Assembly: GCF_001194135.2 (NCBI RefSeq)
Contig: NC_068998.1
Location: 49,472,339-49,513,498 of the forward strand
DNA length: 41,160 nucleotides
DNA from: Octopus bimaculoides
Taxonomy: Eukaryota
Reading direction: 5' to 3'
Below, in pieces: positions 1,062 through 38,936 of this stretch. The translations under genes and the position numbers were made by a program. A model generated the notes under the pieces. The model did not search any database, had not been told where the DNA came from, and saw nothing but the letters and a program-made list of their open reading frames with translations. How positions within the stretch are numbered: the first letter of the stretch is position 1; the number at the start of each line of letters is the position of its first letter.

Positions 1062-2278
1062 CTGTAACGTGACAAAGATGTGTTCAATAGAGTGGTTTTA
1101 GCAGAGGCATTTTTTGTTCTTTGAAGTAAACTTGTAATTCGAAAGGCAATATTTAAGGAAAAAGTATTTGTTACTGCTATCTATGCGTTTTCTTGTGTTT
1201 TAACGGTCACCTCTTGAAAATCGTTGTTTGATTACCTCCCCGTATCATGCACCGTTTGAAAATAAATAAGTTGTTGGTTTCTTCTATAGAAGAAACAAGC
1301 AAATATGAAAAGGAATGCACATTTACATAACTGTGCTAATGTTGCTGTACAGTTCTTAAATATCACTCGCATTTTTATAGCTTACTTAGTGTATATCGCA
1401 ATAAAATTGTATTGGGAAGGGACCGATGTCATAAATAAATAAGCAATAGTAAAATAGAGACATTTATATTAAAATTGCAATAATTACCTAATGTTAAACT
1501 TTTTCCATCTGTTTAATTTTTCAACCGACGCGCTGAAACGAATATTTGATATATTAGGATTGATATTAATACCCTCTATTCCAATTTCATTAATTAGCTC
1601 CAGAGATGCTGTTATGAATTGAATAGAAGTTCCTTATACAAATATTTATGTGCTAAGATTTAACTGCCTGAAATTTAATGAGGAATTAATGCAGATACCC
1701 ATCTATTTCGTTATCGCGTTTCAGTTTTGCATAATACTGTTTAAATCGAAGCTTAATATAGTTTTTCATATTGTGTGTGAAATAATAAAAATAAAACAAT
1801 TGCAAGCGAAATATCAGAAAATTTGTTACTTCGGTTAGACAGAGAATATTTGATCGATGTGGTCCTATAGCCATTATAACATCCATTAGGTAACGTTTGT
1901 GCTCTGATTTAGAGACAAGAATCTGTACTATATGAGATCTAATTGACACACGCAATCGATTTAATGGAAGACCAATATTTCAATGATAAATATTGTTTCG
2001 GATTATGGGACAAAGCTTGTAGGATAAGAATTTCTATTTTGAAATCCCATGATGCTTGTGGACACTACTTGTGTTACTAGGTCTATTGTTTCGTAGAAGG
2101 TTTCTCTTGCAAACACAAATAACCATATACACTAAAAAAATGTCATGTTATGTATTACAAATATGAATTTCAGTTGAATGAAAGAGAAAAGTTAGTACGC
2201 TATCGTCTCATTGATTAAATTAATGTAAGTATCATTTATAATGAATTATGCAGAAACAATGCAAATTAAAGTAATTAC

Positions 2279-2372
2279 CTTAGGTAGGCATTTTGAAGTG
2301 AGCATGGTGTGAAACGTGACAGCACAGTCTCTACGAACGTCTTTCAGACAAAAATAATATTCAACCCAATGT
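2279..2372 (-). CDS. Paralogue 1 exon 3 (HWVEYYFCLKDVRRDCAVTFHTMLTSKCLPK)
   Basis: Acceptor ctttatcttacag, donor gtaatt, 94 nt in all four copies, W/C/C/C/P invariant. Confidence 0.88.
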
Positions 2373-4303
2373 CTGTAAGATAAAGACAAGACGGTTTTCA
2401 TTTCGAATCTAAAGTAATCGTTTATTAACATTATTATCAAGAAATGCTAGAACCATGCTTCTCGTACTACGAGAGCCTACCATTTATTCGGTTCTTAAAT
2501 CTGTGCTTGACTGAGTGCTTACTAGCATATACTGATTTACATTGAATCGAATTCTCTTGTAACCGAAATATCTTCTGTTTCACATGCAAATTTTTAATGC
2601 TTGGGTTAATGCGTAGAAACTTCTACACTTTGTATATCTGTTAGAACACTTTTGTAGATGGCAAAGCTGCTGACTTAAAAAAGGAAGGATACAACATATG
2701 GTATATTAGATAAAGTATTTTAGACTAATATATAATGGCCATGATTTGAAAGCAATTAATCCTAACTATTCTTATCCACTGATAAGTTTTAGTATTTAAA
2801 CAATTTCGAATATTCAAAACCGTTCCTATATTTAAACATTCGATGATCAGAAGGATTTTCGAAACGATAGAACATATAGATTTACGAACGGTATAGTTAA
2901 ATTGTTTCAGTTATTTGACCGTGAGCATGCTGGGACAACGCCTTGTAATGGAAGGAATTGAAAACTGAAAGCCAAGCAGAAATGATACTTTATATTCGCT
3001 AGCTGAGTAGATCGGAGCAACATGAAAGGCCTTGCTCAAGGACACCACACTCAGCCGACTATGGCATTGCGAACCTTACGATTATGAGCCGAGTACACTA
3101 ACCATTAAGCCACGCTCCTTTCAGAGTACAAATCATTTCGTAAGTAAGCATTCCTAATAAGAATCGAATTAAAGTATTCTTATTCAATATACGGTTATAC
3201 GGTTATAATAAATGACGCTAAAAATAGTTAATCTGCAAACATAATTATTTAATAGTAATAATAAACATTTTATTTTTGCTGTCGTGAAAACAACTTTCAA
3301 GTATTTTTCTTCCACAATATCAAAAGATTTTGATTGATCCAAATCGGTGAGCGCTCCAGTCATGCCAGTTTCTTTACCCGCCCTCTCTATGATGTAACGC
3401 GTAAGGTGAACTTTGTCGTGAATAGTACTATTTGGGATGGCGAGCAGCAATTCTTACGTTTATTACGGCACAGTGGAATGATTCCTTGGCTTGTACTCCG
3501 TTGCAAATCTCACTTCCACAATGCCGAAGTGATTTCCTCTTGTCATATATATTTTGTTGGTCCAAACTTCCTTCAAGTTCATTTCCAACAGTTTTGGGGC
3601 TGCTCGTTCTACCCTTTTCTACTTTATATTTAAAATTCTGTGGATCACTGTTTTTCGATCGGTTTCCTTTATAATTTCCTGAGAGGTGTTAAGGAAAACG
3701 TTGTTTCCATCTTTCCTATTCATTTTCTTGTTTTTTTCTTCCTTCTCCTGTGCAGAAACAATAATGGTGGTTCAACCTCCCGCTCTCACACACTCGCTCA
3801 GTCGTCATTGTTGTTCTTGGTTTAAATTTTCCAAAATTTTCAGAGAAAACTTTCGGATAAAAATGGTTATTTAGTCCTCAAAATGGGGCTTTTTTCAACA
3901 AAAACTAGTTCTCTATGTGGGCAGCCAGCTGGGAACAGAAATGAAACAATACAAATAAAAGTTCGACAATTTGAGACATAGAAATTTAAAATAACTTCAG
4001 GACCTCCAAAACGTGTGACTTATAACGATAAGTAACAACAGAGATATCTACTACTAACATTGAAGTCTGAGACGTTTGCAGGAAATCCTCGCCCTGCCCC
4101 TGTCGGTGCATAGGCAGCCAGCACTCTGAAGGCACCACCGTCACTGTTGCTTACATCTAGGACCACGAGCTTACCTACTATGTCCAGGAAATCTCTCTTC
4201 ATTTTCAAAATCAGACATTTTCCAGAAAAGCACCGGGGTACCACCACTGCCCCCTTCCGGTCGACACGGAGATAGGCCGGGAGGGGGCAGTAACAACAAC
4301 AGC

Positions 4304-4347
<44 letters not shown>

Positions 4348-4362
4348 AACAACAACAACAAC

Positions 4363-4401
<39 letters not shown>

Positions 4402-5714
4402 CATACGTACACGCATTCTGCACTAAGTGTTGGGGATGGCGTGATGGAAGTCGATTTATGCAGGCAATAAGTAGTGGCCAATCTACCGCACTCGGATAGC
4501 ACATCAGCAGCAGCACCTAAAGGATTTATTTAATTACTAATAATTAGTGATACACATACTGGGTGTGTAATCATTATGTTTAAAAAAGAAAGCAAAAATG
4601 AAAGAAAAATGCTGAAGCGTTAATGTAGAGCTAAATTCGGATCCGCGTTCTCTCAGTAGGCAATTATAATATGTGTTTCATGAATGATATCACTGTTGTT
4701 CTGATTCCGTTATAACTTCACAGGTGACGATGTCGTACGATTATTTGGTGATTCTTTACTACNNNNNNNNNNCGTTATAACTTCACAGGTGACGATGTCG
4801 TACGATTATTTGGTGATTCTTTACTACAAAATATTTGGAAGGTGAACATTTTTATAATTTTGTCATAGTCTTTTATTCTTTCATTCTATTATTTGTTTCC
4901 GTTATTAGAGTGCAGCCATGCTGGAGCACCACCTTTAGTCGAACAAATCGAACCCAGGACTTACTCTTTGAAAGCTTAGTACTCATCCTATCGGTCTCTG
5001 GCCTACGGGGATGTAAAGACGCCAATATCGGTTGTCAAGCAAGAGTGGCGGTGATGCGGGGGCAAACACAAACACTCAATTATGCACACATANNNNNNNN
5101 NNNNNNNNNNNNNNNNNNNNNNNNNNNNNNNNNNNNNNNNNNNNNNNNNNNNNNNNNNNNNNNNNNNNNNNNNNNNNNNNNNNNNNNNNNNNNNNNNNNN
5201 NNNNNNNNNNNNNNNNNNNNNNNNNNNNNNNNNNNNNNNNNNNNNNNNNNNNNNNNNNNNNNNNNNNNNNNNNNNNNNNNNNNNNNNNNNNNNNNNNNNN
5301 NNNNNNNNNNNNNNNNNNNNNNNNNNNNNNNNNNNNNNNNNNNNNNNNNNNNNNNNNNNNNNNNNNNNNNNNNNNNNNNNNNNNNNNNNNNNNNNNNNNN
5401 NNNNNNNNNNNNNNNNNNNNNNNNNNNNNNNNNNNNNNNNNNNNNNNNNNNNNNNNNNNNNNNNNNNNNNNNNNNNNNNNNNNNNNNNNNNNNNNNNNNN
5501 NNNNNNNNNNNNNNNNNNNNNNNNNNNNNNNNNNNNNNNATATATATATATATATATATATATATAACATCATTTCTATGTAATCATTTAATATATGAAT
5601 ATGGATTCTGTATTTTATACACCAGATGTAAATGTTATGAAAAACTGAAAAGAAAATATTTCAATATTGCAGCTTACCTCCAAAGAGAAGAAACACGAAG
5701 AATAAAGTTTTCAT
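2279..5714 (-). CDS. Paralogue 1 of a secreted 6-Cys small-protein family; join 5714-5678, 4516-4411, 2372-2279; 3' end unresolved
   Basis: Spliced translation MKTLFFVFLLFGGAAADVLSECGRLATTYCLHKSTSITPSPTLSAECVHWVEYYFCLKDVRRDCAVTFHTMLTSKCLPK. Splice sites GAG|gtaagc, cctttag|GT, GT|gtacgt, cttacag|A, AAG|gtaatt; phases 1 and 2 match. Signal-peptide-like N-terminus ending AAA. Exon 1 is linked across a 447-N gap. Confidence 0.8.
2920..3120 (-). mobile_element. tRNA-derived CORE-like SINE remnant; orthologous copy 31720-31905, fragment 13545-13580
   Basis: Minus strand reads ggagcgtggcttaatggttagtgtactcggctc (tRNA A-box-like head) and later ccttgagcaaggcc (CORE-like). Confidence 0.6.
3250..3450 (-). 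mobile_element. L1/Tx1-clade LINE RT fragment
   Basis: IHDKVHLTRYIIE...GALTDLDQSKSFD matches the L1/Tx1 RT motif (LDQxKAFDxV); same insertion point as 32100-32330. Confidence 0.8.
4040..4285 (-). mobile_element. L1/Tx1 APE-endonuclease fragment
   Basis: FLDIVGKLVVLDVSNSDGGAFRVLAAYAPTG resembles the APE NxYAP region. Confidence 0.75.
4290..4400. repeat. (AAC)n(AAT)n microsatellite next to the exon 2 donor; orthologous tracts 14710-14920, 25081-25130 and 37277-37335
   Basis: Read directly from the sequence. Confidence 0.95.
4411..4516 (-). CDS. Paralogue 1 exon 2 (GAAADVLSECGRLATTYCLHKSTSITPSPTLSAEC-V)
   Basis: Acceptor aaatcctttag, donor gtacgt, 106 nt, open, 3 Cys. Confidence 0.85.
4865..5090 (-). 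mobile_element. Octopus-type SINE 3' half in intron 1; orthologous copies 15270-15500, 25525-25715 and 37715-37945
   Basis: Motif catgctggagcaccgcctttagtcgaacaaatcga...cggttgtcaagcga with a (TATTCTTT)-like tail, recognised from memory as a high-copy octopus SINE; same position in all four genes. Confidence 0.65.
5678..5714 (-). CDS. Paralogue 1 exon 1 (signal peptide MKTLFFVFLLFG)
   Basis: ATG at 5714, 37 nt, phase-1 donor gtaagc; same length and donor in the other three copies. Confidence 0.8.
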
Positions 5715-5923
5715 GTCTTTTCTTTTACGCGTTAAAAGAAACGAATAGTGCTATAGCAATCAATAATGTTGTATTGTTACATGTAATGACATACAGTGTA
5801 ACATATGCGAGGCAACAGTAAAACAAAACAGCGTAATTCAATTAAGTCTGTCATATTAGATTAGAGAGAGAGACAATAGTTCTTTCGCCTGAAAACGACT
5901 TATGCGTAGATACGTAAATAAAA

Positions 5924-5967
5924 ACTTACAGTTGAATATTTATTTTTTCTGTTTAGATAATTATATA
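5924..5967 (-). promoter_or_regulatory. Conserved upstream block with TATA-like TATATAA (5967-5961) and a GTAAGT (5929-5924)
   Basis: TATATAA is present about 250 nt upstream of the ATG in all B copies; function not demonstrated. Confidence 0.3.
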
Positions 5968-6205: not shown

Positions 6206-6269
<64 letters not shown>

Positions 6270-6289
6270 ACAAATTATTATTATTATAA

Positions 6290-8150
6290 AAATCCCACAA
6301 AAACAACGTGTGACTGATGCCTGATCAACGGGGCAAGAGAACTTCTTATATTTCTTCGCAGGTGTACACTCAGAATTGATCATTTCACACTGGCCATTCT
6401 TCCAGCATTCACCCACATTTCAACAAACTTACAAGAAAGCAACACTTCCCTTTCCATCCTCAACTTTCTTTTCAAGTGAAACTTGAAAAAGTCGATGACG
6501 GCTAGGCCAAAAAGGAAAGTGCCTCCTTTAGACCTTCCAGACACGTCCGCCCTACTGCCTCTTTCGCTATAGCCACCAGAGAAATAATAACTGTCACCCG
6601 GCCAAAGGAGGGTGGTGAGGATATCCGCACTACGGATTCATCAGATAGCCGGTTCCGTTTCACATGCGACATAGGGTGTTCGACATAAACCCACATACCA
6701 GCAATACTCGGGCACTGGACGAAGTCGTGCAGAACGGTTTCATCGTTCTACACGCACCTCAGGCCGGCTCGGCTGACGGCACTTCCACGCCTGACAAGTT
6801 TATCCCAAGCAGACAGCGTCTTTCTGTTGCACCTTCCACAGAAAGCGGAAGAATAAGTGCACCTGCTTCGTCAACCAGCAAACGAAGCAAGGCATAACGG
6901 TCAAGCGGTAATAGATGACGGATACGAAGTACACATTCGCCACCTCTGCTCAACCTTACAGAGACAGCTTCGTCTCGGCCCATTTCTGTGTGTGATTGGA
7001 TAAGCTGTTCGTCACCAGATCCATCTATTTCTCCATCTGGATATCTGGACCGAAGCAGACAGTCTGTCCAGTATCCTACGATGGCTGTCCAGCGCCCTAC
7101 AACGACTTGGTGTTACAAGCCCACTGGCGTGAATTTTTGTTCTTATCACCGTTTCATATCCTTTCAGTGTGTGTCCAATGAGATCTATATGTCTCTGGCT
7201 CGATACTCTCACGGCGATATCATCAGAGTAAGCAGATACACTTCTCACACATCTTAAATCACACTGGACACCACTCAAAGCCTCCTACTTCAGCAGTAGT
7301 GATTCAAGTATCAGTTCATACCGAAGATATGAGAGAGAGAAACCTTGCCAGACCGAGCGCTAGATGCTGAATTATTCCAACCGGTGACCATTCAACCGAA
7401 CAACCGCACAGATATCAATGCAAAAAGAGATCCAACATCGGAAAGCCTGACCGAAACCGAGTATTGATTGTCGACGCCATAAACGGTTTTAGATTGATCT
7501 AAGTTGTTCAGAGTCCCACCCGTGTGAGCTTCGTTACCCACTATCTCACTCTGATGTAGCGACTGACGTAGTGGTTGTCCGGAATAGTCCTGGTTAGCAT
7601 GGCGCTTACGCCTAGCAAACGAGCTTGTCCACGACAAGAGCCAAAATCTTGGCTAATACATTGGCCAAAATCTTTAACCCTGCATGAAGCAAAGTGATGG
7701 GCCTGTAATTTTCTATAACGTGCCACCGCCTCTCGACATAGAAATATGAAAAATCTTCTATTCTGCTGCCAGTTGTAGTAGACGTCTGCAACGAGGACCG
7801 CAAATAAGTCTGGCATGGATATATAAAGCTGGTAGGGCAGACCGTCCAAACCCGTCTATATTACTCTCGTGTAACTCTTCAACGCTTCCTGTAAGACCGC
7901 GGCTGTTATTGGCCTTTCGCAGCAATCCCCTTTGCACGTAGAGAGTCACAGCAGGATGTCCAAGTGGCCACCGAAATCTACCCTGTTATCCGTTCTATCA
8001 TTCGTCCTGAACAGTCGAGAAAAGTACTGCTGAAAGCCGCATACGTCTGTTTTGCTTCGAACATCACGCGCTCGTTCTGGTCCACTAAAGACCGAATGTT
8101 GGCTTGTTGTCACGTTTTGTCTACGTCACTGGAGCACCTCGTGACGCTTC
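6290..8150 (-). mobile_element. Degraded L1/Tx1 LINE ORF2 (RT N-terminus and C-terminal CCHC region) with (TAA)n tail at 6208-6285
   Basis: DGLPYQLYISMPDLF, ENYRPITLLHAGLKILANVLAK, HDFVQCP..MWVYVE..LVAIAKEAV; frameshifts and stops. Confidence 0.88.
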
Positions 8151-9240
8151 TTTTCCTCAAACACACACACACACATGCGCGCGCGCGTGCGTTTTTGGCG
8201 ATGAATTCTAAGCGTACAAAGACGACTTAAAGAAGAAGAATTGGAGTTACTGATTTTAAATGGTTCAATATTTCGTGATCCTCTCATTTTATTGTGAATA
8301 TTCATAAATGTAAATTGTACATAAGGGTGTCCTATATTATTCTTAGGTCATATCGAACAAAATTACTAAATACATTCACTGATGTAATCTCCTCTCGCAA
8401 CCATAAATATTTTCGTTCCTTTTTGAATATATACATAAATAAATTTAAACATATGAGTTGAGCTGGATTTGAAACTGGATAGTGATCTCTGAATTCTATT
8501 CAATCATTTGATTGTGAAAAAAAAAATATGAATTTTAGAATAGGCCTTGCTGATAGAATCATGCATTTAATTATTTTTTTATTTAAAAAATCTTTTTATT
8601 TGTAGGCCCATTAAATTTATTCCGTACTCACCATATATAAGTGTTCTTTTTCCTGTTCTTTTAATAATAATGAGGGATTACCAGATCGGGGACCCACAAT
8701 GGTGGAGACAAAGTTTTGGTTTCGATAAAGGGGTCACTGCTAATTTGGTGTTTTAGTGTGTAATGGATTGTAGCATCTGCTCTTGAAACGGCCGTAGACG
8801 TGGATTTATTCTTACATTATTCTGCATTCCTTTTCCTTTTGGACTTGCCCATGGATGATATCTCGCATTCACATTGCATTTAGCAGTCTAACTATCTTAT
8901 TTTTCATCGCGTCGCTATACACAATCATATTTTCTTCATATATATATTCGTTTCTTCTTCATACACTTTCATACAGGTTTTCACAAGTTCTTTTATAGGT
9001 GAAAATATATGTATATGTTAAGCCTTCTGGCTCTGGGTGCGGTATATTAACATGCATTTATTTTCTACATTGTAAATATGTAGGTAGGATGTGAAGATGT
9101 TTCACCAATTATAGTGGTTAATTTTCAAACAAAATATATATAGATATATCACATATATAGATATATCACAATCATTTCTATGTCATCATTTAATATATGA
9201 ATATAGATTATGTATTTACACATCAGATATATATGTTATG

Positions 9241-9270
9241 AAAAACTGAAAATGAAGAATAAAGTTTTCA
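9241..9270 (-). pseudogene. Truncated duplicate of exon 1 (MKTLFF..., donor deleted)
   Basis: Same flanks as 5570-6150, but about 44 bp containing the last codons and the gtaag donor are missing. Confidence 0.7.
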
Positions 9271-9879
9271 TGTCTTTTCTTTTATGCGTTAAAATAAATG
9301 AATGGTGCTATGACAATCAACAATGTTATGTTCTTATATGTAATGCTTTACAGTGTAACACATGTCAGGCCGCAGTAAAACAAAACAACCACATACAGTT
9401 AAGACTGTCATATTAAATTTCAGAGCAACAATAGTTCTTTCGCCTGAATATTTAATTGTCGAATAACGATTTATACGTGGATGTATAAATAAAAACTTAC
9501 AGTTGAAAATTTCTTTCTTTCTTTAGAAAATTATATAACCTGTATTCAATAAACTGAAGCATAATTCCTTTCTGGAATGTTTATCCCCATTTTTTTTTCA
9601 TTCGTTTCTCATATTACAGTGCGACAATGCTGATGCACCAAAATGAAGGATTTACGAAACAAATCGGCCTGAGTACTTATTTCTTAAGATTATACCGTGT
9701 CTATTGTCTCTCCCACTATTTACCCTACGTCCTCAAATCTCTTACCGACCGAAAGAAGCATAGTTTAAATGAAGAATTTAATCCCTGTTGCAACTATTAT
9801 TATTATTATTACTATTATTATTATTTTATGTTTGACTTTTGTTTTGCATTTGTACACGTTGGATCCAAGTCTCACCCAG

Positions 9880-10856: not shown

Positions 10857-12905
10857 TGAGTTTATTTCAGTTTCCGCTGACAAGCGTCTCTCGAATCGGG
10901 ACGAAATCTTTCGTGCAATGGGACTGAAATTGTAACCAAATGTATTGTTTCCACGCACTAAAGTCCGCAGTTGTGTTGAAATTTATTTGCATTCGTCCGA
11001 TTTTAAAGTTTTGTTTTGTCCTTTGTAAACATTTCATAGGATTTTCTTAATTATCTCTCACTCCTTTGTGATTGTAACAGTATTAACGTGTTGAGTAACA
11101 TGACCGTACAGACAAGAGACTGTGGCATTATATCCTGCTCACCGAAAATATATTCGTGGAATGTTTCATAAATCAAATCGATTCTTCGAGTTTCATATAA
11201 AAAGTAAACTTTTATGTCGAGGAAAGCATTTGTGTAAACATTTAAATGGGTTCCTAATACGTCAACGGACAGGTATACATGATTTTAATACGTTTCACAC
11301 AAACATAGTATCTAACAATTTGACGGTAGCTCTGCAAACAATACCCTCTAGCAATCTCCTTGCACCCATTTGAGAGAAGAAATGAAAAGTTAATAAAGTT
11401 GTTCTTGCTACAAATTTATTGTTTAACATTTAAAAAATTAACTTACGATAGTTAATCATTTCGTGATACATGTTTTCTTTTACAGCTGAATTTGAGATAA
11501 AACAAGAAGAAAACAGTTTATATATCTTTAATATTATTTAATAATGAGGAACTTCACTGCTCAAGTTCAGAATATTCGTCAGATTTCACCAGACCTGTAA
11601 CGTTATAAAAATGTGTTCAATAGTGTTTTTAGCAAAGGCATAATTTGGTTCTATGAAATAAACATGTAATTAGAAACGTAATATTTAAGGAAAAAGTATT
11701 CGTAACTGATTTCTTTGGGAGTTCTTGTGTTTGAAATCTCACCTCTTGCAAACCGGTGTTTATTTGTTTACATCCACGTGTCATTCGCAATTTGACAAAT
11801 TGCACCGATAGAATAAATACTGGGGTCGTTTTCTTCTGCAGAACCCTTAAATGCATACCCCCAACATGACCACAGTCCTACGAAAGAAACAAGCAAATAT
11901 GAAAAAGGAAGGAACAACTACATTACTGAGCAAAATTTGCTGTACAGTTCTTAAATATCACTCGCATTTTATATAGCTCACTTCGCGTATATCATACCAG
12001 GATTGTATTGGGACTTGTTCGATGTCATAAACAAATAATATGCAATAGTAAAATAGAGACATTTATGTTAAAATTGCAATAATTACCTAATTGTTAAACT
12101 GCTTCCATCAGCTTAATTTTTCAACGGAGGCGCTGAAACAAATATTTGATATATTAGGATTCATATTAATACCCCCTATTAAAAGTTCAATTTTTATCTC
12201 CAGAGATACTTTTATCAATTGGATACAAGTTCATTATACAAATACTTATGTGCTACGTTTTAAGTAACTGAAATATAATGAGGAATTAATGCAGATTTCT
12301 ATCTATTTCGTTATTGCGTTTAAAATTTGGGTGATGCTGTTTAAATCGAAGCATAATATAGTTTTCCTTCTTTTGTGTGAAATTCAAAAAAAAATTGCAA
12401 GCGAAATATCGGAAAATTGTTGCTTCGATTACACACAGAAAATTTGATCGATGTGCTCATATTACCACTTTAACATCTATTACCTAACATTTGTGTACCG
12501 AGTTAGAAACAAGAATCGGTATTATACGAGATCTAATTGATACAACAGTATAAGTGTACAGCATTTTGTTGTCATGCGCAGTCGATTTAATGGAAGACAA
12601 ATATTTCAATGATAAATATTGTTTCGGATTATGGGACATACCTTGTAGGATACGAATTTCAATTTTGAAATACCATGATGCCCATGGACACTATACGTGT
12701 TACTAGGTCCATTGTTTTGGGGAACGTTTCTCTTGCAACAACTTATAACCACTATCATTACAAAAAATGTCATATTATGTATTACAAATATGAATTTCAG
12801 TTGAATGAGAGAGAAAAGTTAGTACGCTATCGTCTCATAGATTAAACTAATGCAAATGTCATTTAGAATTAATTACGCAGAAAGAATGGAAATTAAAATA
12901 ATTAC

Positions 12906-14709: not shown

Positions 14710-14761
<52 letters not shown>

Positions 14762-14826
14762 GTAACAGTAATAATAATAATAATAATAATAATAGTAACA
14801 GTAATAATAATAATAATAATAGTAAC

Positions 14827-14899
<73 letters not shown>

Positions 14900-16402: not shown

Positions 16403-16464
<62 letters not shown>

Positions 16465-26642: not shown

Positions 26643-28636
26643 AATTTGCATACACATACGAGTGGATTGTTCCTCAACATGTATAATATTATCTAAAGCA
26701 GTTTAATTCTTTCTCATGAGACTTAAGATTTGACAGGTTTCTGACTGAATCATAAGTTGTACAGATTCGACAATCAAGCATATCCACTGGAAAATGATTC
26801 CCTTAGGTCATGGCGATTCCAGTCCTGGTGTTAGGAGTGAGACTGCATTTCAGCGACATTCAACATTTCTTTGGCCGTATGATTGCACAAAAGGCTGATT
26901 ACGCCTTGGAGTTTGGCGGGCTTTTGAAGGGAATTGGATGCAGAGTGGAGGAACGCTGGTGAGTGTAACTGCGTATATATACATCCTATGTATGAGCATG
27001 TGATTAAGTAACTGTGTTATTGGTTTCATGGGTGAGTATATATGTAAATATATTCTGTGAGCATATGAACATAAGGGCCTTAGTTTTTGCTGTATACGCA
27101 TGCGTGCTCGAACGTGTTTAGGGTTTATATTTGGTGACATGGGCTGAAGCATGTACATTCTTGAATTTGTGCATAAACGTTTGGGTGCATCTTTGTCTGG
27201 AAAAACATACGCCTGCTTGTGATTTGTCTTGTGCATACACACATATGTTTTCGGCAGATTAATGCTTAGTGTACATACACTACTTGTAGAAGAATAGGGG
27301 TTACTATCTTAAATGGTCCAATATTTCGGGGTACCCACATTTTATTCAAAATATTCATAAATGTAAATTGCACCTAAATGAGTCCTATATTATTCTTAAG
27401 GCATTTGGACCAAAATTATTAAATAAATTCACTTTTGTAATCATACATTTTTCTACATTTTTAAATATTTCCAAAACAGAAATTAAGCCTTTTAGAAGAC
27501 CTCCTTTTGAAACCGGGAATTGATCTCTCAAATCTAGCTGCTTATTTGATTGTGATAAAAAATATTATGAATTTTAGAATAGATGTTACTGATACAATCA
27601 TGATTTAAAATAAAAATAGGGCTAGAGAAGAGGTGTCTGTCGGAGAAAATATTTAAACAGTTTTCTGGATGTTTAAACATTCTTCTGGATGGTGAACGTG
27701 TGTGGTCCTAACGAAAACTTAATGAAAAATGGAAATATGTAGCACGAGGGTGGCGAGTGGTTGTAAACGTGTGAATATTCCATAATGTACCTTGAAACGT
27801 ATTAGTTGTGAATTGGGGCTCGTGGGGTCGGAGCTAAACACAAACACCACTCCATTTCTTGTGTCTATTGTGGTGTATATATTCATTCGTTATATATACA
27901 TTATATGTCAATTTTTTTATAGGATTTTAATGTTAAATTCATTCGTATATCTGACCCTCAGATTGTACTGTCCCTATCTATGTTTGCCCCCCCCCCCCCC
28001 AATGGGCAATAAAGAAATCAATAATGATGGATTAGCAGAACGGGAAACATCACTGATGAAGATATATCTTTTTGACCGGATGAATTAACCTTTGCCGATT
28101 TGTTGTTTTAATGTGTAAAGGATTGTGTCACTGACTCTTGAATCGGCCATAATCGTGAATCTATTCTTGCAGTATTCTGGATTCCTTGTTGTTTTTGACT
28201 TTCTGATGGATATTATCCCGGATTCAATTTACATTTAATACTCTGACTACATTATTTTTTTATCGCCTCGCTATATACAATTATATTTTATTCATATATG
28301 CGTTACTTCTTTATAAGTGTTTTACAGTATTTCACGTTTTTGTATATTTGAAAATATACGTATATTTGTTTTACCTTCGGGCTTAGTGTGAGGTATCTTA
28401 ACATGTATTTATATTCTACGGTTTGAAAATATGCGTTAGATTTGACGTTGTGTGACCAATCATTGTGATTAATTTTTAACCACAAATGTAAATTAATTTC
28501 TATGTAATCATTTAATATATGAATGTAACTTCTGTATTTACACGGCAGATGTAAATATGAAAAACAAAAAAAAAATATTATTTCAAAATTACAACTTACC
28601 TTCAAGGAGAAGACAAAGGAATATTAAAGTTTTCAT
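24110..28636 (-). CDS. Paralogue 3; join 28636-28600, 25234-25135, 24203-24110; 3' end unresolved
   Basis: Spliced translation MKTLIFLCLLLEGAAEQSTCEKFAADNCMTIEQHNIQVRTYSLQCLGWIYHFFCLNKLHNDCAGMFHKRFLSQCRPE; donors gtaagt, gtacgt, gtaagt. Confidence 0.85.
25135..25234 (-). CDS. Paralogue 3 exon 2 (GAAEQSTCEKFAADNCMTIEQHNIQVRTYSLQC-L)
   Basis: Acceptor aaatattttag, donor gtacgt, 100 nt, open. Confidence 0.85.
25750..26010 (-). mobile_element. R4/Dong-type RT fragment
   Basis: Similar to 21140-21320 (tgtgggatcatacc...aaattctgattg...acttccacac). Confidence 0.65.
26020..26570 (+). mobile_element. Interspersed repeat 3' end with (TTA)n tail (SINE or LINE 3' UTR)
   Basis: Copy-specific insert ending in a TTA tract; gatgcacatatcgtcagccact..caactgacaag recalled as a common octopus repeat, not verified. 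Confidence 0.35.
27610..28025 (+). mobile_element. 3' end of an L1/Tx1-like LINE in intron 1 of paralogue 3
   Basis: Begins with tail-of-ORF2-like sequence (gctagagaagaggtgtctgtcggagaaaatattt), then a UTR with poly-C and AATAAA, then an aataat tail. Confidence 0.45.
28600..28636 (-). CDS. Paralogue 3 exon 1 (MKTLIFLCLLLE)
   Basis: 37 nt, donor gtaagt. Confidence 0.82.
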
Positions 28637-29112
28637 GTCTTTTCTTTTATGCGTTAAAATAAACGAATGGAGTTATGTCAATCATGAAAGTTATATTGTT
28701 ACATGTGATGATATGTAGTTTAACATACGCCAGACACCAGTAAAACAAAACAACGCAAATTCAATTAAGACTGTCAAAATAAATTACAATGCGACACTAG
28801 TTCTTTCGCCTGAATACATAATAGTCGAATAACGATTTATACCTGGATACATAAATAAAAACTTACAGTTGGATATTTATTTCTCTCTTTAGATAATTAT
28901 ATAACCTATAANNNNNNNNNNNNNNNNNNNNNNNNNNNNNNNNNNNNNNNNNNNNNNNNNNNNNNNNNNNNNNNNNNNNNNNNNNNNNNNNNNNNNNNNN
29001 NNNNNNNNNNNNNNNNNNNNNNNNNNNNNNNNNNNNNNNNNNNNNNNNNNNNNNNNNNNNNNNNNNNNNNNNNNNNNNNNNNNNNNNNNNNNNNNNNNNN
29101 NNNNNNNNNNNN

Positions 29113-29405
29113 CATAGCCCCTCGACATAGAAATGTAAGAAATGTTCTATTCTGCTGCCAGTGGCAGAAAACGTCTGCTAAGAAGGGCGCAAACAAGTCT
29201 GGCATGGATATATACATCTGGAAGCGCAGACCGTCCAAACCCATCCATCTTACTCTCGTGCAGCTCTTCAACACTTCCTGTAAGACTGCTGCTGTTATTG
29301 GCCTTTCGCAGTACTCCGCCTTGCAAGTAGAGAGTCGTGGTAGGATATCCAAGTGGATACCGAAGTCTGCCCTGTTATCCGTCCTACCATTCATCCTGAA
29401 CATTC
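29113..29405 (-). mobile_element. L1/Tx1 fragment, apparently identical to 19349-19641
   Basis: The ORF track gives the same translation at both loci. Confidence 0.85.
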
Positions 29406-31037
29406 AACTTACAGTTGGATATTTATTTCTCTCTTTAGATAATTATATAACCTATAATCAATAAACTGAAAGATAATTCCTTTGTGGAATGTTTATCCCC
29501 TTTTTTTGTTATTCGGTGTTTGATATTACAGTGCGACCAATCTGGGGCGCAATAATGAAGGCTTTATTAAACAAATCGACCTCAGTACTTAGATTTTAAG
29601 ACTTGTACTGACTCTATTGTCACTTCAACTATATACTGTACACTCATTTCGTGATATATCTTTTCACTTACAGCTGAAATTGAGATAAAACAAAAGGAAA
29701 ACAGTTTGCATGTTATATACTTCTTTATATATCTTTAATATTATTTAATAATGAGGAAGTTCACTGCTCAGGTTCAGAATATTCGTCAGATTTAACCGGA
29801 CCTGTAACGTGACAAAAATGTGTTCAATAGAGTGGTTTTAGCAGAGGTATTTTTTATTCTTTGAAATAAACATGTAATTCTGATATAAGCGTAATATTTA
29901 GTGGAAAAAGTATTTTCAACAGATTTCTGGGCGAGTTCTTGTGTTTGAAACCCCACCTCTTGAAAACAGGATTGTTTATGTTTACATCCCCGTATTATTC
30001 GCCATTTAAAAACTGGTACCGATAGAATAAATACTGGGGTTGTTTTCTTGTGCAGAACCCTTACAGTGGTACCCCCAACATGACCGCAGTCCTACGAAAG
30101 AAACAAGCAAATATGAAAAAGGAAGGAATTAAATTACTAAACAAAATTTGCTGTACAGTTCTTAAATATCACTCGCATCTTATATAGCTTACGTAGTGTA
30201 TATCGTACCAGGATTATATTGGGACTTGTTCGATGTCATAAACAAATAATAATCAATAGTAAAATAGAGACATTTATATTAAAATTGCTTTAATTACCTA
30301 ATGTTAAACTGCTTCCATCACCTTAAGTTTTTCAACGGATGTGCTGAAAAGAATATTTGATATATTAGGATTCATATTAATACCCCCAATTACAACATTT
30401 GTTTTAGCTCCAACGATACTTTCATCAATTGGATTCAAGTTTATTATACAAATATTTATGTGATAAGTTTTAACTACCTGAAATATAATGAGGAATTAAT
30501 TCAGAATCGTATCTATTTTATTATCCCGTTTAAATTTTGTTTTTTTACATAATACTGATTAAATCGAGTCATAATCTTGTTTTTCTTATTGAGTATGAAA
30601 TTATTAAAAATAACAATTCTAAGCAGAATCTCCTATTACTACTATGCTCCTGTTACTACTAAAACATCTATTAGCTAACGTTTGTGTACTGAGTTAGAAA
30701 CATTTTCTTGTCATGCGCAGTCGATTTAATGGAAGACCAATATTTCAATGACAAATATTGTTTCAGTGTATGGGTCAAAGCTTTTAGGATACGAATTTCA
30801 ATGTTGAAATACCATGATGCCAGTGGACACTGCACGTGTTACTAGCTGCATTGTTTCGTGGAAGGTTTCTCTTGCAAAAACTAATAACCAGTTAATACAA
30901 AAATGTCATGTTATGTATTACAAATATGAATTTAAGTTGAATGAGAAAGGTTAGTACGCTATCATCTCACTGATTAAACTAATGTAAGTATCATTTAGAA
31001 TGAATTATGCAGAAAAAATGTAAATTAAAATAATTAC

Positions 31038-31131: not shown

Positions 31132-34100
31132 CTGTAAGATAAATACAACAAAAGGATATTCATTTCGGTTAAAAGGAAATCGTTTATCAAGAATCTTGCA
31201 CACGAAATACACATACGAAGTTTATCAACATCCATGTCAAGAAATGGTAGAACCTTACTTCTCGGACTACGGGAGCCTACCATTCTTATATCGGTGCTTG
31301 GCAGTGCTTACTATTACCTGAATATAAAGCATATACTGATTTACATTGAAACGAATTCTTTTGGAACCCGAACGTTTTCTGTTTTACGTGCAATTTTTTA
31401 ATGATTGGCTTAATTTGTAGACTTGAACACTTTCTATATTTGTCAGAACACTTTTATTGATTGCATAGCTACTGACATAACAAAAACGACGAGAAACAGG
31501 TGGTACATTAGATAAAGTAATTTAGAATAATTTCTAAAGGCTATGATTTTAATAGGTATTAACCATAACTATAATTATCCACTCATAAGTTTTGGTATTT
31601 AAATAACTTCGAAATTTCAAAGCCATTCGTATATTTAAACCTTCGATGATCGGAAGAATTTTCGAACCAATGGAACAAATAAATTTACGAACGGTATAGT
31701 TAAATCGTTTCAGTGATTTGACTGTGAGTATGCTTGGACAACTGAAAGCCAAATAGAAACTATGCCTTATATTCGCTCGCTGAGTAGATTGGATCAACGG
31801 GAAAAAAAAAGTCCTGCTCAAACGCACAACGCTCTGCCGACTATAGCCTTTTGGACCTTACGATTATGAGCCGAGCATATTAACCAGTAAGCCACGCGCC
31901 TTTCTGAGTACAAACCATTTCGTAAATAAACATTCCCCAGAAGAATCCGATCATAGAAAAATACTTCAATATAGAGACGATTTAATTGTCCAGCAACACA
32001 TTTTGCTGTGTTCTGGTACCGTATGGGTATCCCCCGTATGGTGATAATAAATAACGTTATAAATAGTTAATTACAAACATCATAGTTTATCGTAATATTA
32101 AAGGTAATAACAAACATTGTGTTTGCTGCCGTGTAAACAGGTTCCAAGTATTAGTGTTCCACCCTATCAAAACATTTCGATTGATCCAAATTGGGGAGGT
32201 CACGAACCATGCCAGGTTCCTTACCAACCCACTCTATGATGTCGTGCGTGAGGTGAACTTTGTCAAGGAGAGAACTGTTTGGAGTAGCACATGGCGTCAC
32301 TAACCAACTTATTGACGACAAATGTCAACGTTTTGGCTAACACTGTATAACCTTATAAGCTACATACAGCAGAGTTATATGCCTAAAATTATCAATTTTG
32401 TCTCGCTTATTCGGCTCCTTCCTCAGCATCACAACTACTTCATGGCTTACAGCACTGGGGATCCTCCCATCCTGCTACCAGTTGTGGTAGACGTCAGCCA
32501 AGAGTCTACCCAACATGTCTGGCATATGAAAACAAAACTCGAAGGCCAGTACATCCCGCCACGGAGACTTCTCTCTTGCGCAGCCCGTCATCACATCCCA
32601 TATGTCTTTGGCTGTTATCAGTATTTCGCAGAAAACCGCATCCCTGTCTGAGAGGCGCGCCATGCTACTGAGATACGATCTGAAATCCACAACCGTCCCA
32701 CAACCACATCGCGCTCCTTACAGTTCGGTGAAATGCCACTGAAATTCCGCACAGTTTTCCTTGGTTATCATGCGCCCGTCACAGTCTCCATAGACTGAAT
32801 TGTTGCTTTGTGTCTACGTAGTACCTCTACCACCCAGGCCCATTGGCTTTCGTCCCCTCCCGTCTCAGTGAACGTGCGCTAGCTTTGACAACGTAACCGT
32901 CGTACTTGGCATTGAAGAACCGATGAAGAATCAATCTCGTAACAAGTATCGCCGGCCGGTATTCCTTTCTTAAGCTTCTCTTCTAACTCCCTAATTAGGT
33001 CTCTCTCTGTCCTAGATTCCTCTTGCGCTAACTAAAAAACTTTCTCCTCTACTCTAATAGCCACTTTCAATGCTATCAACCATCCGTTGTTGACTATTGT
33101 TCTCGCCAACTCTCTATAGACTAACTTAATAACCCTGCCCTGTCCATGAAAGCTTGGAGCGCCGGGAAAGACCCCTTCAGTTTCCATTATCCGGGGCACT
33201 GTCTATGGATCACATGTATGTCATCCGTAAAGATAAAAAAATTATGGTTCGTGTAACCAACTACTGTGAAACGGAGAAAACTTATACTACTTCTTTCTAC
33301 AAGCCTACAGAATACTCTATCGAGATATCATCTGGAAGACCATAAGCAGTTCGTCCATCTTCGCATTGGCGCAATCAGGAAATCCAGTCAACTAACTGAA
33401 AACAACTGAGCTAGACTTTCCCTATCCTGGCGTGAGTCCAAGAGGGCATTCAAATCACACACTAATATCCAAGGAAAAGCTCCAGATGTATGACGATATC
33501 TGGATGCCCCACCCCTGTGGGGGTCTAAACATCAGCTATTCTAAAGACAGCACCTTCACTGTTACTCGGGTCCACGACATATATCGTAACCTCCGAGTCG
33601 AGGAAGATCATTCGAACTTCGATATCCCGGCCTTTTCTGAACAACAGTGCCAGTGCACCTCTCGTTCTGGGCTGACTAACAGATATGTAGGTCTCACAAT
33701 CGTCGAAAATGGGTAGAAGATCGGGTGTATCCGAATTTCCGGTCTCACTGGTTGCTATCACATCGAAACCTAGTGATCTGAGGTCATTGAGCAATCTATC
33801 TTGCTTGCAGGATGATCTCAGAACGCGAACATTTATGCAGCCCACTCTGACAAACTCTATGACGGCTCGAAAGGGTTAATGAAGCAAAAAGTGTGGTGTT
33901 ACTTACTTTCTTGATGTTGTTGGCAGCCCGACGATCCGGGATCCAGATCTCCGTCCTCTGGAGAACCGGCTAAATGATTCTTCGTGGCGCGGATATTTGG
34001 CCTTCCCACCTCATGCAGGAAATTCCTCTGAATTTCTTTGTATGTTTCGAGGAGTAGGCGAATCAACATTTAATAGTCTGGAGCTCTAGAGCTACTGGTG

Positions 34101-37100
34101 TTGTAAATTGCTCCCACTCTCTCAATCACCTCGTTTCTAGCTTTGAGAACCAACAAATTTTTGTTGGCTCCCCTTCATAAGCATGTCATTCGGTGTTTCC
34201 GTATTGGTGACTGAGCTTGGGGGTTACGTGTGGTGACTACGTGTGGGCGTGAATGCATTGATGGACTTAGTTGGCGTAGTGGTGGTTGTAGGGATGTTGG
34301 TGCTTGTATTGTTTCTGTTGAGTCCATGTTCGATGTACTGGGAGTTTCTGGGTTTTGACTAGTTGGTTTAGGTTCCTCTGTTTTCTTTTTCCTATGTCGT
34401 TTACGTTTCTTTTTGCCTTGTAAGTTTCTTTCCTGCCTTCACTACGGGATGGTGAGGGTCTAGTCTCTGGAAGATCTGTCTCGAGGTGTTAATGTGTCTG
34501 TGCTAGTCTTAACGTTTTTCTGTGAGTGTATGCTTGAGCGAGGTGGGTTAGACAGATATCCTGAGTGGTGTCCTCCATTGAATGGGGTTCTCATGCCTGT
34601 ACTGTTGCTGGAGATGAGGCTTCCGTTTCATTAAAAGATTTCGGTTGTTGCTGGTGATGCGATATTGGCTGCAGATGTGTCCGCGTACCACACATCGTTT
34701 TGGGGCAGAAGGTGTCCAGGTAGTTTGTGGGGCTACAGATGTCGCATCTGAATCACCTGCTTTCCATGACGAGACTCAGTTCCAGTCCGTTCGCAAATGG
34801 ATCTGGTCCGGGTTCTTCTCGATATCTAGTTTTACATGGATTCATATTTCGAAGTTGATCCCACACCAGTTCTCCTTGCTACTCCATTTAACGTGCAGGC
34901 GGAACTTTGGATCCTTCACGGCACAGGTGCAAATCCAGCAGACGTTTATACCCATTGGCACGCCATTTACCCAAATTCTGGTAGTTATCCTTGAGAGCCA
35001 GGTGGGATATTGGACTCACTCTTCGGTCCACCGGGCTGAGACTACCTGTCTTCGCGCGAGGTCCGCGATTTTAAAGGGGATCTCAATGCTGACAAACTGC
35101 CTCTCTATCTGTATATGCGCCACATCTATGAACATTTTTCTGTGGACTTTCTCAACATGACTGATAGAATCAATTTCAGCCGTCTTACTTCTTCTCTATT
35201 GCCTCTATTATTTCGGTACGTGCACTACCTCCTTACCTCATCAAATCTAATGATGTCTTTCACTTTTGAGAGTCCACGGGTTTTTTTGTTATTGAGTGTG
35301 ATGGCAACCATTTCTCTCGTGGTGTTCGCTACATCAACAAACATATTTGTTTTGTTTTTGTTGTTGTCGTCATCGTTGCTCTTGTCATTGTTGTTACTGC
35401 TATGCTATTGTTGATGGTGGTGGAGTTGTGGCCAATTTCCCTGTTGCCACTCTCACCACAATTGCCACCGCTATATCCTTCAGCCTTCAATTCTATCATT
35501 ATTTTTCCTCTTAACATCCGTAGCATTATTAACGAAAATACTATCGCTGCTACCACTGCCAATCCCATCGCTTTTGCTGATAGCGTATGAGATAGCGTAA
35601 AAGAGAGAACAGCATGGGAAAGTGGGCTACAGGCAATATAAGCCCACTACGCATGTAAGACACTAGGAGCTCCAACAAAAATTTTGTGATAAAGAGAAAA
35701 AAAGACATAATAATAATAAGAAGAATAGTAGTAGTAGAGGTAATAATAATAATAATAACAATAATATTAATAATTCATTCTTTATTAGACACAATGCTTA
35801 CATATAACAACATAAAATGACGTGTGACACAACATAAAACACATGGCGAGACAGTGTTTCACAGTATGTAAACATTTCAAGACAAAGAAATAAACAACAA
35901 GAATCTCCTAATAGGGGAGGCTCTTTAAAGATCCTCATGGGAAACCCCACAAAAGCTATGGGTACCTCATCAACAGGGTAAGAGCCATTCCCATTTTATT
36001 TATTCGGATGTGTACGCTCAGAATTGGTCCTTTCACACTGGCCATTCTTCTAAACTTTACCCACTTTTCAACAACCTTACTAGAAGGCAACACTTCCTTC
36101 TCCACCCTCAACTTCCTTTTAAGTGAATCTTGAAAAAGTTGATGAGGGGATTGGCCAAAGAAGAAATAGTCTGACTTTTGCCTTTTCAGACATGTTCACC
36201 ATACTACATTTTTCGCTACAGCTACCAGAAAAATAAAAACTGACTTCCTTTCCCGGCCAAAGGAAGGCAGCGGGGAAATCCACACTATGGATTCAGCTGA
36301 CNNNNNNNNNNNNNNNNNNNNNNNNNNNNNNNNNNNNNNNNNNNNNNNNNNNNNNNNNNNNNNNNNNNNNNNNNNNNNNNNNNNNNNNNNNNNNNNNNNN
36401 NNNNNNNNNNNNNNNNNNNNNNNNNNNNNNNNNNNNNNNNNNNNNNNNNNNNNNNNNNNNNNNNNNNNNNNNNNNNNNNNNNNNNNNNNNNNNNNNNNNN
36501 NNNNNNNNNNNNNNNNNNNNNNNNNNNNNNNNNNNNNNNNNNNNNNNNNNNNNNNNNNNNNNNNNNNNNNNNNNNNNNNNNNNNNNNNNNNNNNNNNNNN
36601 NNNNNNNNNNNNNNNNNNNNNNNNNNNNNNNNNNNNNNNNNNNNNNNNNNNNNNNNNNNNNNNNNNNNNNNNNNNNNNNNNNNNNNNNNNNNNNNNNNNN
36701 NNNNNNNNNNNNNNNNNNNNNNNNNNNNNNNNNNNNNNNNNNNNNNNNNNNNNNNNNNNNNNNNNNNNNNNNNNNNNNNNNNNNNNNNNNNNNNNNNNNN
36801 NNNNNNNNNNNNNNNNNNNNNNNNNNNNNNNNNNNNNNNNNNNNNNNNNNNNNNNNNNNNNNNNNNNNNNNNNNNNNNNNNNNNNNNNNNNNNNNNNNNN
36901 NNNNNNNNNNNNNNNNNNNNNNNNNNNNNNNNNNNNNNNNNNNNNNNNNNNNNNNNNNNNNNNNNNNNNNNNNNNNNNNNNNNNNNNNNNNNNNNNNNNN
37001 NNNNNNNNNNNNNNNNNNNNNNNNNNNNNNNNNNNNNNNNNNNNNNNNNNNNNNNNNNNNNNNNNNNNNNNNNCAAAATTCTCAGAGGAAAATATTTGGT

Positions 37101-37284
37101 AAAACGGGGTTACCCGAAAAGGGGGCCTTATTTCAATAAAAAAATATAAAAACTAGCTCTCTATCCGAGCAGACAGCTTGAAACAAAAATTAAACAATAA
37201 AAACAAAAGTTCAACAATTTGTGACAACGAAATTTCAAACAACTTTAGGAGCGCCAAAACGTGTAACTCACCGCAAGCAGCAGC

Positions 37285-37317
<33 letters not shown>

Positions 37318-38936
37318 AATAATAATAATAATAATACGTACACGCATTGTGCATTGACTATTGGAGATTTATAGTTAGCTCTCGTTGAATTCGTGCAATA
37401 ATCAACAGCCAAATCATCACATATGGGTAGCGCAGCAGCACCTAAAAGATTTATTGTTTCATTTACTGATAATTTGTGATACAGGGTGTATAATCGATTT
37501 GTTTCATTAAGAAAGAGCTAATACCGAAGTGTTAATGTAGAGCTAAATTCGGATTCCCATTCTCACAGTAGGCAATTATAATATGTGTTTCATGAATGAT
37601 ATCACTGTTGTTCTGATTCCGTTATAACTTCACAGGTGACGATGTCGTACGATTATTTGGTGATTCTTTACGACAAAATATTTGGAAGGTGAACATTTTT
37701 ATAATTTTGTCATAGTCTTTTATTCTTTTATTTATTTCAGTCATGTGAGTGCAGCCATGCTGGAGCACCGCCTTTAGTCGAACAAATCGAACCCACGACT
37801 TATTCTTTGTAAGCTTAGTACTTACCCTATCGGTCTCTTTTGCAGATCCGCGAAGTTATGTGGATGTAAACACAGCAACATCGGTTGTCAAGCGATAGTG
37901 GGGGGACAAGCACAAATGCACAAACATACACACACACGCACACACACACGTTTATATTTATACGAGAGGCTTCTTTCAGCATTGGCGTCTGGCGGGCTTT
38001 TGACAGGATGGAAGCGGATTGAAGGAACGCTGCTGAGTGTAACTGCGTGTCTATATACACCATGTGTATGAACATGTGGTTATGTGAATGTGTTATTGGT
38101 TTCATGTGTAAGTACGAGTATAGTGAGCGTAGTAATTTGAGTGCCTTAGTGTTCGTTGTATACGCATGCATGCTCGAACGTGTCTAAAGTGCATACGTGG
38201 TGTAGTGTGTGGAAGTATGTACGCTCTTGCGTTTGTACATAAATACTTGAGTGCATGATTGTCTGGAAAAACGTATGCCTGCTTGTGTTTTGTCTTGTGT
38301 GTGCAAGTGAGTACACACACATACATACATACATACATTCATACATACATACATACATACATACACACGCACACGCACACACATATAAATGATTTGTTTT
38401 CGGCAGATGAATGCTTAGAGTACATAAACGACTTGAAAACGAATGAGAGTTACTATCCTAAATGGTGCAATATTTCGGGATCCCCTCATTTTCTTCTAAA
38501 TATTCATGAATATAAAATATGCAGAAGTGAGTTCTATATTATTCTTATGCCATACAGACCAAAATTATTAAATAAATTCACTAATATAATCCTATTTTGC
38601 AATCAATTTATTTCGTTCATCTTTGAATATATACGAGAGCATGTATCCCTGCCCCGTAAAATTCTGTTGACTATTCTTTGAGACACTTCTTCACTACAGT
38701 TTTCACTTCCTCGTCACTGGAATAATGTTTGCTTCTCAATTCCTCTCTGAAGGCACTAAATCTGGTGAGTGTGGAGGTAGGGACGAGATGTCTCAAAGAA
38801 CAGTCAACAGAATTTTACGGGGCTGGGATAAATGCTCTCATTCTAAGGCGAAACATTGCTATTGAGAAAATCGTTGAGAAGTAGGGATGTAATCCACTGA
38901 AGACCACCTTCATTTTGATATATGATACATACATAT

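Follow-up and report, generated by a model that had tools for sequence, protein, structure and literature searches.

Four small tandem genes, whose exons for the mature peptide differ between copies more than the DNA around them, are found in a 41,160-nt window of the Octopus bimaculoides genome (RefSeq assembly GCF_001194135.2, contig NC_068998.1, positions 49,472,339–49,513,498); by the window we mean the whole stretch of DNA analyzed. All four genes are on the minus strand. The paralogous copies are numbered c1 to c4 along the window, coordinates are window positions, and exons are given in the 5' to 3' direction of the minus strand. Each gene is predicted to encode a secreted peptide with six invariant cysteines (Cys), and the two exons for its mature part exceed the introns in divergence about 2–2.5-fold. 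The surrounding non-coding DNA has mosaic ancestry, and no homologues of the peptides were detectable in the collections searched. We consider it probable that the locus is an array of intact genes, shaped by diversifying selection together with partial homogenization of the non-coding DNA.

According to this reading, four intact paralogues and the relic of a fifth exon 1 would form a tandem array evolving in the birth-and-death mode and encoding lineage-restricted, secreted, disulfide-locked helical ligands. Diversifying selection would act on the residues outside the scaffold, presumably exposed at the surface, most clearly in exon 2. Gene conversion or unequal crossing-over among the array members would partly homogenize the promoters and introns around the exons, and the coding exons either would have escaped homogenization, or it would have been selected against there.

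Self-comparison of the window (~35% G+C, nine runs of N) reveals four tandem units of ~7–11 kb with patchy common blocks at 70–85% identity, separated by copy-specific insertions, such as fragments of long interspersed nuclear elements (LINEs) and simple repeats; an element resembling short interspersed nuclear elements (SINEs) is also found. Each of the four units contains one small gene. Exon 1, encoding the putative signal peptide (MKTLFFVFLLFG in c1), is 37 nt long in all copies, starting with the ATG and comprising 12 codons and one further nucleotide; it is located at 5714–5678 in c1, 18774–18738 in c2, 28636–28600 in c3 and 40351–40315 in c4, the last of these beyond the range 2161–37441 considered in the initial annotation of the locus. 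Its donor is GTAAG (gtaagc in c1), and the intron after it is of phase 1. Exon 2 (4516–4411, 106 nt in c1; 15022–14926, 97 nt in c2; 25234–25135, 100 nt in c3; 37441–37342, 100 nt in c4) encodes the signal peptide's end and the initial half of the mature peptide with Cys 1–3; it has the acceptor TTTAG and the donor GTACGT, retained in all four copies, and precedes a phase-2 intron. Exon 3, 94 nt in each copy (2372–2279, 12999–12906, 24203–24110 and 31131–31038, respectively), has the acceptor CTTACAG and the donor GTAAKT and encodes the second half of the mature peptide with the tryptophan (Trp), Cys 4–6 and the proline (Pro). The splice sites are canonical and conserved, the intron phases are compatible, and the reading frame is retained in four copies out of four.

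All nine N runs are intronic or intergenic and lie at least 139 nt from the nearest exon, so no exon count rests on gaps. The link between exons 1 and 2 spans gaps in c1, c2 and c4, and that between exons 2 and 3 spans a gap in c4; c3 is the sole copy with no gap from exon 1 to the 3' end, and, as it is collinear with the other three, it supports the gene models. The 10-N gap at 4763–4772 is bracketed by an exact 55-nt direct duplicate (4708–4762 = 4773–4827), indicating two overlapping contig ends left unmerged, so that the sequence is continuous there and ~65 nt are almost certainly artefactual.

The pairwise difference between the copies is 0.36–0.41 in exon 2 (mean 0.385) and 0.29–0.36 in exon 3 (mean 0.321), and across these two exons 55–70% of residues have changed around a fixed Cys/Trp scaffold. 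Non-coding DNA differs by 0.11–0.29, typically 0.15–0.20, over ~3.5 kb that can be aligned; for the neutral comparison we used a well-aligned non-coding block of ~2 kb around exon 3 (c1 940–2940, pairwise difference 0.07–0.21). None of 1422 non-coding windows of 94 nt (mean 0.156, maximum 0.277) reaches the level of exons 2 and 3, and the proportions of variable and invariant sites differ between exons and non-coding DNA (Fisher p~1e-6). Moreover, the divergence changes sharply at the splice sites of exon 3, from 0.07 outside to 0.25–0.38 inside and again to 0.09. The proposal of the initial annotation that exons here diverge faster than introns is borne out by these data.

Its counts are reproduced exactly as well: 30 of 94 nt differ in exon 3 between c1 and c2 (19 replacement codons and 2 codons with synonymous changes only), 41 of 100 nt differ in exon 2 between c3 and c4, and there are 12 differences in the adjacent 118-nt intron flank. 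This flank is, however, unusually well conserved, and the overall contrast is ~2–2.5-fold rather than the 3-fold that it suggests. Similarly, the signal-peptide exon, described as conserved, is so relative to the mature exons but merely follows the background rate: it differs by 0.08–0.19, equal to its own non-coding flanks (8–19%), with the silent rate relative to the intron rate (denoted c below) of ~1.25 and the ratio of nonsynonymous to synonymous rates (dN/dS, omega) of ~0.66.

The divergence is accompanied by strict constraint on a part of the peptide. In agreement with the initial annotation, there are no stops in the exons, the indels in exon 2 are of 6 and 3 nt, and none of the four copies departs from the six Cys, the one Trp and the one Pro, nor from L57, A65, F68 and S74. 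The spacing of the Cys is 7, 15/16, 8, 7 and 11, three of them falling in exon 2 and three in exon 3. In simulations of unconstrained drift to the observed divergence, all four frames remain without a stop in only 0.15% of runs (P=0.0015), and the six Cys together with the Trp are retained in none of 20,000 runs (P<5e-5). As drift almost never preserves these features, we conclude that purifying selection maintains the scaffold and that none of the copies is a pseudogene.

The precursors are 77–80 amino acids (aa) long and have a putative signal peptide of ~16 aa (MKT-hydrophobic-AAA), read from the sequence in all copies as MK followed by 9–10 hydrophobic residues and (G/S)(A/V)A(A/E), by which the peptides would be secreted. 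The mature peptides are 61–64 aa (~7 kDa), aromatic-rich, with pI of 5.3–8.4; a single N-glycosylation sequon is found, in c4. Presumably, the six Cys form three disulfides. The AlphaFold model of c4, obtained with the four-sequence alignment (pLDDT 80, pTM 0.61), has three helices, at residues 2–12, 27–40 and 44–53, suggesting a three-helix mini-protein fold. The lack of cationic character in the mature peptides speaks against a classical antimicrobial peptide; their near-neutral charge and helical six-Cys build resemble water-borne signaling proteins and helical toxins more closely than defensin-type effectors. Such a peptide may bind an external, fast-changing partner as a putative toxin, pheromone or defense ligand. 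The arms-race function put forward in the initial annotation is conjectural.

How strong the case for diversifying selection is varies with the choice of neutral sites. Relative to introns, all codon positions have changed in excess: we count 47, 55 and 35 changes at positions 1, 2 and 3, respectively, compared to 18.4 expected at the intron rate, or a minimum of 0.78, 0.92 and 0.58 changes per site compared to 0.30–0.33 in introns, and the excess of position 2 over position 3 is itself significant (p=0.045). Nonsynonymous divergence, dN, is 0.45–0.61, compared to the intron divergence K of 0.16–0.23. With an MG94-type codon model, whose branch lengths are constrained by the trees of the flanking introns, omega is 3.35, and omega=1 is rejected with p=2.5e-25. 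Exon 2 has omega of ~2.1–2.2 (p=0.03–0.04). The site model M2a is preferred to M1a (likelihood-ratio statistic 8.34, p=0.015); it assigns omega ~0 to 14% of codons, corresponding to the scaffold, omega 3.6 to 27%, and neutrality to the remaining 59%. Estimates of omega by the Nei–Gojobori method range from 0.93 to 1.73.

The non-coding DNA has, in turn, a history of its own. The best-supported grouping of the copies at informative sites switches along the alignment, being 12|34 at c1 2940–2700, 14|23 at 2372–1700 and 13|24 at 1700–900. Such mosaic ancestry indicates gene conversion or unequal crossing-over, and the contrast between exons and introns hence mixes diversifying selection with homogenization of introns. 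In addition, the promoter and 5' regions of c2 (18765–19643) and c3 (28627–29407) are near-identical, with 295 identical nt and 4 differences in ~285 nt; the similarity ends at the ATG, and divergence beyond it is 16–30%. The mosaic groupings and this tract together show that the homogenization is real. The contrast reflects two components: about 2-fold comes from introns that look younger than exons, and about 1.4–1.65-fold on average, more at a quarter of sites, comes from an excess of replacements.

A number of observations weigh against diversifying selection within an array of intact genes. When the exon silent rate is freed in the codon model, c becomes 1.96 (c=1 is rejected with p=0.014), and omega decreases to 1.65 (p=0.062 against 1); in agreement with this, the proportion of silent differences, pS, at codons for the same amino acid is 0.24–0.42, compared to 0.14–0.19 in introns, in every pair of copies. 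The gene-wide omega in the GY94 M0 model is 1.4–1.5 (p=0.15–0.23). Exon 3, the main example of the initial annotation, has omega of ~0.8–1.1 and c of ~2.7. Recombination, which has occurred in the array, inflates site-model tests; moreover, the codon models are our own implementations, not PAML or HyPhy, and they are applied to four sequences with ~60 codons and ~39 silent sites at high divergence. As to the genes themselves, the models are drawn from genome sequence only, with predicted 3' ends, and the AlphaFold model of c1 from the same four-sequence alignment is poor (pLDDT 50) and was not used. Finally, the near-identical c2/c3 tract adjoins assembly gaps in both copies (19065–19236 and 28912–29112), so that an assembly artefact is possible, and the tract results either from gene conversion that happened very recently or from an artefact of assembly or gap filling.

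The claim of diversifying selection made in the initial annotation is therefore retained in part. It holds relative to introns (omega 3.35), at a subset of sites (M2a, p=0.015) and in exon 2 (omega ~2.2), but not gene-wide (p=0.06–0.23) nor in exon 3, where omega is ~1. The initial annotation itself stated that the claim would fail if omega did not exceed 1 once homogenized introns and equally high exon dS were accounted for; we find one half of this combination, with exon silent sites changing ~2 times faster than introns and ancestry of the non-coding DNA being mosaic, and gene-wide omega being 1.4–1.65.

The strongest of the alternatives is that homogenization of introns alone accounts for the contrast. 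The duplications would then be older than the introns suggest, and the mature exons would drift with omega of ~1 outside the scaffold, with no positive selection involved. This agrees with the doubled silent divergence of the exons in both estimates given above, with the values for exon 3 alone (c=2.74, omega 1.11), with the failure to reject omega=1 gene-wide, and with the conversion evidenced by the mosaic groupings and the c2/c3 tract. However, about 14–18% of codons have omega of ~0, so the mean of 1.4–1.65 requires omega above 1 elsewhere, as also indicated by M2a over M1a, by exon 2 analyzed separately (omega ~2.2, p=0.027) and by the excess of changes at position 2 over position 3. In addition, the steps in divergence match the splice sites in all pairs of copies, unlike random ends of conversion tracts, and even in the least similar intron pairs the difference of ~0.20–0.21 is well under the proportion of nonsynonymous differences, pN, in the exons (0.34–0.42). 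Conversion barred specifically from exons would itself imply selection for copies to be different. We consider this explanation unlikely, though not negligible.

A more doubtful alternative is exon-targeted hypermutation, that is, a mutational process raising the rate in mature exons for silent and replacement changes alike. A process of this kind has been proposed for conotoxins, whose mature exons have both high dN and high dS, with error-prone polymerases suggested as the cause (PMC3862624). In the octopus genes, all codon positions are indeed above the intron rate, including position 3 (35 changes compared to 18.4, p=3.5e-4), and c is ~2–2.7. On the other hand, no known mechanism follows splice sites to within a few nucleotides, the signal exon, which belongs to the transcript as well, keeps to the intron rate, and there are very few silent sites to count. 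Nor do the octopus genes have the consistent transversion bias reported for conotoxins: the transition/transversion ratio kappa is 2.2 in exon 2 and 0.6 in exon 3.

The last alternative, that these are not functional genes but non-coding patches of high variability, pseudogenes in decay or artefacts of mis-assembly near gaps, may draw on the nine N runs, the unmerged overlap at 4763–4772, the fully identical 295-bp segment beside gaps and the failure to find any homologue or annotation, but it is highly improbable given the open frames and invariant scaffold, the indels in multiples of three, conserved GT/AG sites with compatible phases, the distance from the gaps to the exons and the gap-free c3, as well as the introns that differ by 15–20% and carry distinct transposon insertions, so that the copies are not collapsed alleles.

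Returning to diversifying selection combined with partial homogenization in an array of intact genes, we searched for relatives of the peptides. Scanning of the four precursors against Pfam-A with hmmscan (E<=10) yielded no family match, in particular no toxin, Attractin, ShK-like/ShKT or saposin-like family. No match was produced by a word-indexed protein search with c4, by exact look-up of ten alternative full-length models or by a PDB sequence profile; Foldseek comparison of two models with PDB reached no E lower than 4.9 and no probability above 0.13; and the peptide strings had no relevant mention in the literature search. The HMMER profile search of 1.84e9 protein representatives returned one match with E=7e-6 (P0001, L002), a 178-aa open reading frame (ORF) composed of 40-aa tandem repeats on a 2.4-kb JGI metagenome contig (3300027377). 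The repeat holds C-x2-W-V-E-x6-C-L-S-D-V-H, a loose echo of C-x2-W-x5-C-L-x-D-V in the peptides; as the score stems from three repeated stretches, we judged it a chance match and rejected it as a relative.

Judged by these searches, the peptide family appears to be an orphan in every collection covered, and the genes would constitute a lineage-restricted family. The locus is a new family with an already known evolutionary mode. A more specific interpretation is offered tentatively, at somewhat less than even chances: this would be an undescribed lineage-specific, probably cephalopod, family of secreted peptides with three helices and three disulfides, situated outside current proteome annotations, with diversified exons and homogenized surroundings, and representing a new class of venom, chemosensory or mating-signal molecules with a fold of its own.

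Exons that outrun their introns are known from a short list of systems, namely conotoxins, snake phospholipases A2 (PLA2) and three-finger toxins, and lysin. The octopus genes fall in this class of accelerated evolution, as the means for the mature exons (0.385 and 0.321) exceed both the mean and the maximum for non-coding windows (0.156 and 0.277), as well as the values for the signal exon (0.08–0.19). If this is confirmed, an unannotated orphan family of disulfide-stabilized helical mini-proteins joins the list; to our knowledge, no such fast-exon family has been reported from this lineage.

In PLA2 genes of habu and other viperids, a case of accelerated evolution (Nakashima/Ogawa), there is conservation of introns and untranslated regions (UTRs), changes accrue about equally fast at all three codon positions, and KA is above or approximately equal to KS (PMC7285919). 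The changes at the three positions in the octopus genes (47/55/35), omega of 1.4–1.65 and introns that are ~2–3 times less diverged are similar to this pattern; the differences are that PLA2 is an unrelated 14-kDa enzyme fold from vertebrates and that its role in venom is documented.

In conotoxin genes, dN and dS both peak in the mature exon, indels are trinucleotide, simple repeats abound in the introns, and the introns are in phases 1 and 2 (PMC3862624). Conotoxins of the M, O, T and I superfamilies, like the octopus peptides, are small, secreted and disulfide-rich, have three coding exons with phases 1 and 2, and combine a hypervariable mature region with a conserved signal region and conserved introns. 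The trinucleotide indels, repeat-rich introns and raised dN and dS in mature exons are also shared, the likeness being in architecture and evolutionary mode only. In contrast to conotoxins, the octopus peptides have no similarity to Pfam conotoxin families and no propeptide, their Cys are divided between two exons, not gathered in the last coding one, their loops (7/16/8/7/11) are of far greater length, the predicted structure is all-helical, and the signal exon is conserved no better than its neutral flanks.

Another parallel among molluscs is MgCRP-I of Mytilus, a lineage-restricted orphan with six invariant Cys, a hypervariable mature peptide and positive selection detected with M1/M2 models (PMC4558851). 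Orphan status, six Cys, a phase-1 intron after the signal-peptide exon and site-model support are common to both. Unlike the octopus family, MgCRP-I has a conserved propeptide, a single mature exon, a usually cationic peptide and a knottin/defensin-like Cys pattern, and no sequence similarity between the two was detected.

With regard to structure, Aplysia attractin and Euplotes pheromones are secreted helical proteins of 40–60 aa with six Cys in three disulfides, and in Euplotes pheromones the hypervariable mature region follows a conserved pre-pro region. The octopus peptides are comparable to them in near-neutral charge and in the three-helix fold predicted. At the same time, the octopus peptides do not match the Attractin profile of Pfam, they have no match among PDB sequences and none with E<4.9 in Foldseek, the IEECKTS motif is absent, and the Cys spacing is different.

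The locus provides a compact natural test case for telling apart forces that are commonly confounded, as traces of positive selection, intron homogenization and, possibly, exon-biased mutation are all found within 40 kb. Moreover, four divergent 7-kDa scaffolds with a fixed Cys frame are candidates for bioactive-peptide screening. As to function, MgCRP-I is a cautionary parallel: this positively selected six-Cys orphan was inactive in every assay tried (PMC4558851).

Downstream of exon 3, the sole acceptor conserved in all four copies is that corresponding to c1 933. It adds Leu and the stop codon TAA, and the polyadenylation signal AATAAA (AATAAT in c1) follows 58–105 nt past them. The resulting exon is probably the terminal exon of each gene, with predicted boundaries 933–861 in c1 (TTG TAA and the 3' UTR, AATAAT at 866–861), 11485–11415 in c2 (CTG TAA, AATAAA at 11420–11415), 22703–22640 in c3 (CTG TAA, AATAAA at 22645–22640) and 29673–29563 in c4 (CTG TAA, AATAAA at 29568–29563). 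The homology of c4 to c1–c3 stops ~25 nt past the stop codon, where the region upstream of c3 begins. Other 3' exons were rejected as incoherent between copies: acceptors at c1 ~1665 and ~1532 add 3–4 residues in three copies and lead to read-through in the fourth, and a candidate 93-nt exon at c1 ~1283–1200 is open in c2 and c4 and has stops in c1 and c3.

The stretch at c1 1170–1290 (c2 ~11750–11842, c3 ~22980–23075, c4 ~29960–30056) is the second most divergent non-coding one, with a mean pairwise difference of 0.277. It contains indels and has a strong acceptor together with a GTG donor in three of the copies; read in phase 0, it is open in c2 and c4 only, with stops in c1 and c3. Possibly, this is a fourth coding exon, either alternative or in decay.

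Between c1 and c2, a duplicated promoter-like block (~9138–9829) carries a relic of exon 1 on the minus strand at 9271–9253, with the ATG at 9271. Nineteen nucleotides of the exon are left (ATGAAAACTTTATTCTTCA), and the rest, together with the donor, has been lost by a ~44-nt deletion. This fifth promoter-like block with its truncated exon 1 is a dead partial duplicate.

Several repeats are common to the four copies. The SINE-like element, on the minus strand, contains a tRNA-like box (GGGTTCGATT), and its center is (GT)n-rich. It occupies the same position in intron 1 of each copy (c1 4850–5092, c2 ~15263–15560, c3 ~25500–25720, c4 ~37700–37990) and hence is older than the duplications; the copies of the element differ by 12–19%. 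It appears to resemble an abundant octopus SINE; a literature search with its strings gave nothing relevant, and Rfam and tRNA scans of the window were empty.

Degenerate fragments of non-LTR (long terminal repeat) retrotransposons, also on the minus strand, are found at 32000–36300, 16360–16863, 20692–21396, 7544–7860, 19328–19639 and 28906–29403, and their ORFs are of three sorts, endonuclease-like, reverse-transcriptase and C-terminal tail. Intron 2 of c4 has been enlarged by one of these fragments, which also raises the local G+C content to ~44%; due to this LINE-bearing insertion the intron, which also holds the gap 36302–37073, reaches ~6.2 kb. A search with the reverse-transcriptase fragment from the window yielded no match, and the LINE-tail ORF has relatives with 74–79% identity on two ENA metagenome contigs only (L001).

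A (GTT)n/(ATT)n microsatellite on the minus strand starts ~6 nt past the exon 2 donor in all four copies (c1 4292–4405, c2 14710–14920, c3 ~25084–25130, c4 ~37284–37336), with a length of ~45–210 nt and variable composition. Runs of (ATT)n are also observed upstream of promoter blocks, at 6207–6287 and 40862–40912.

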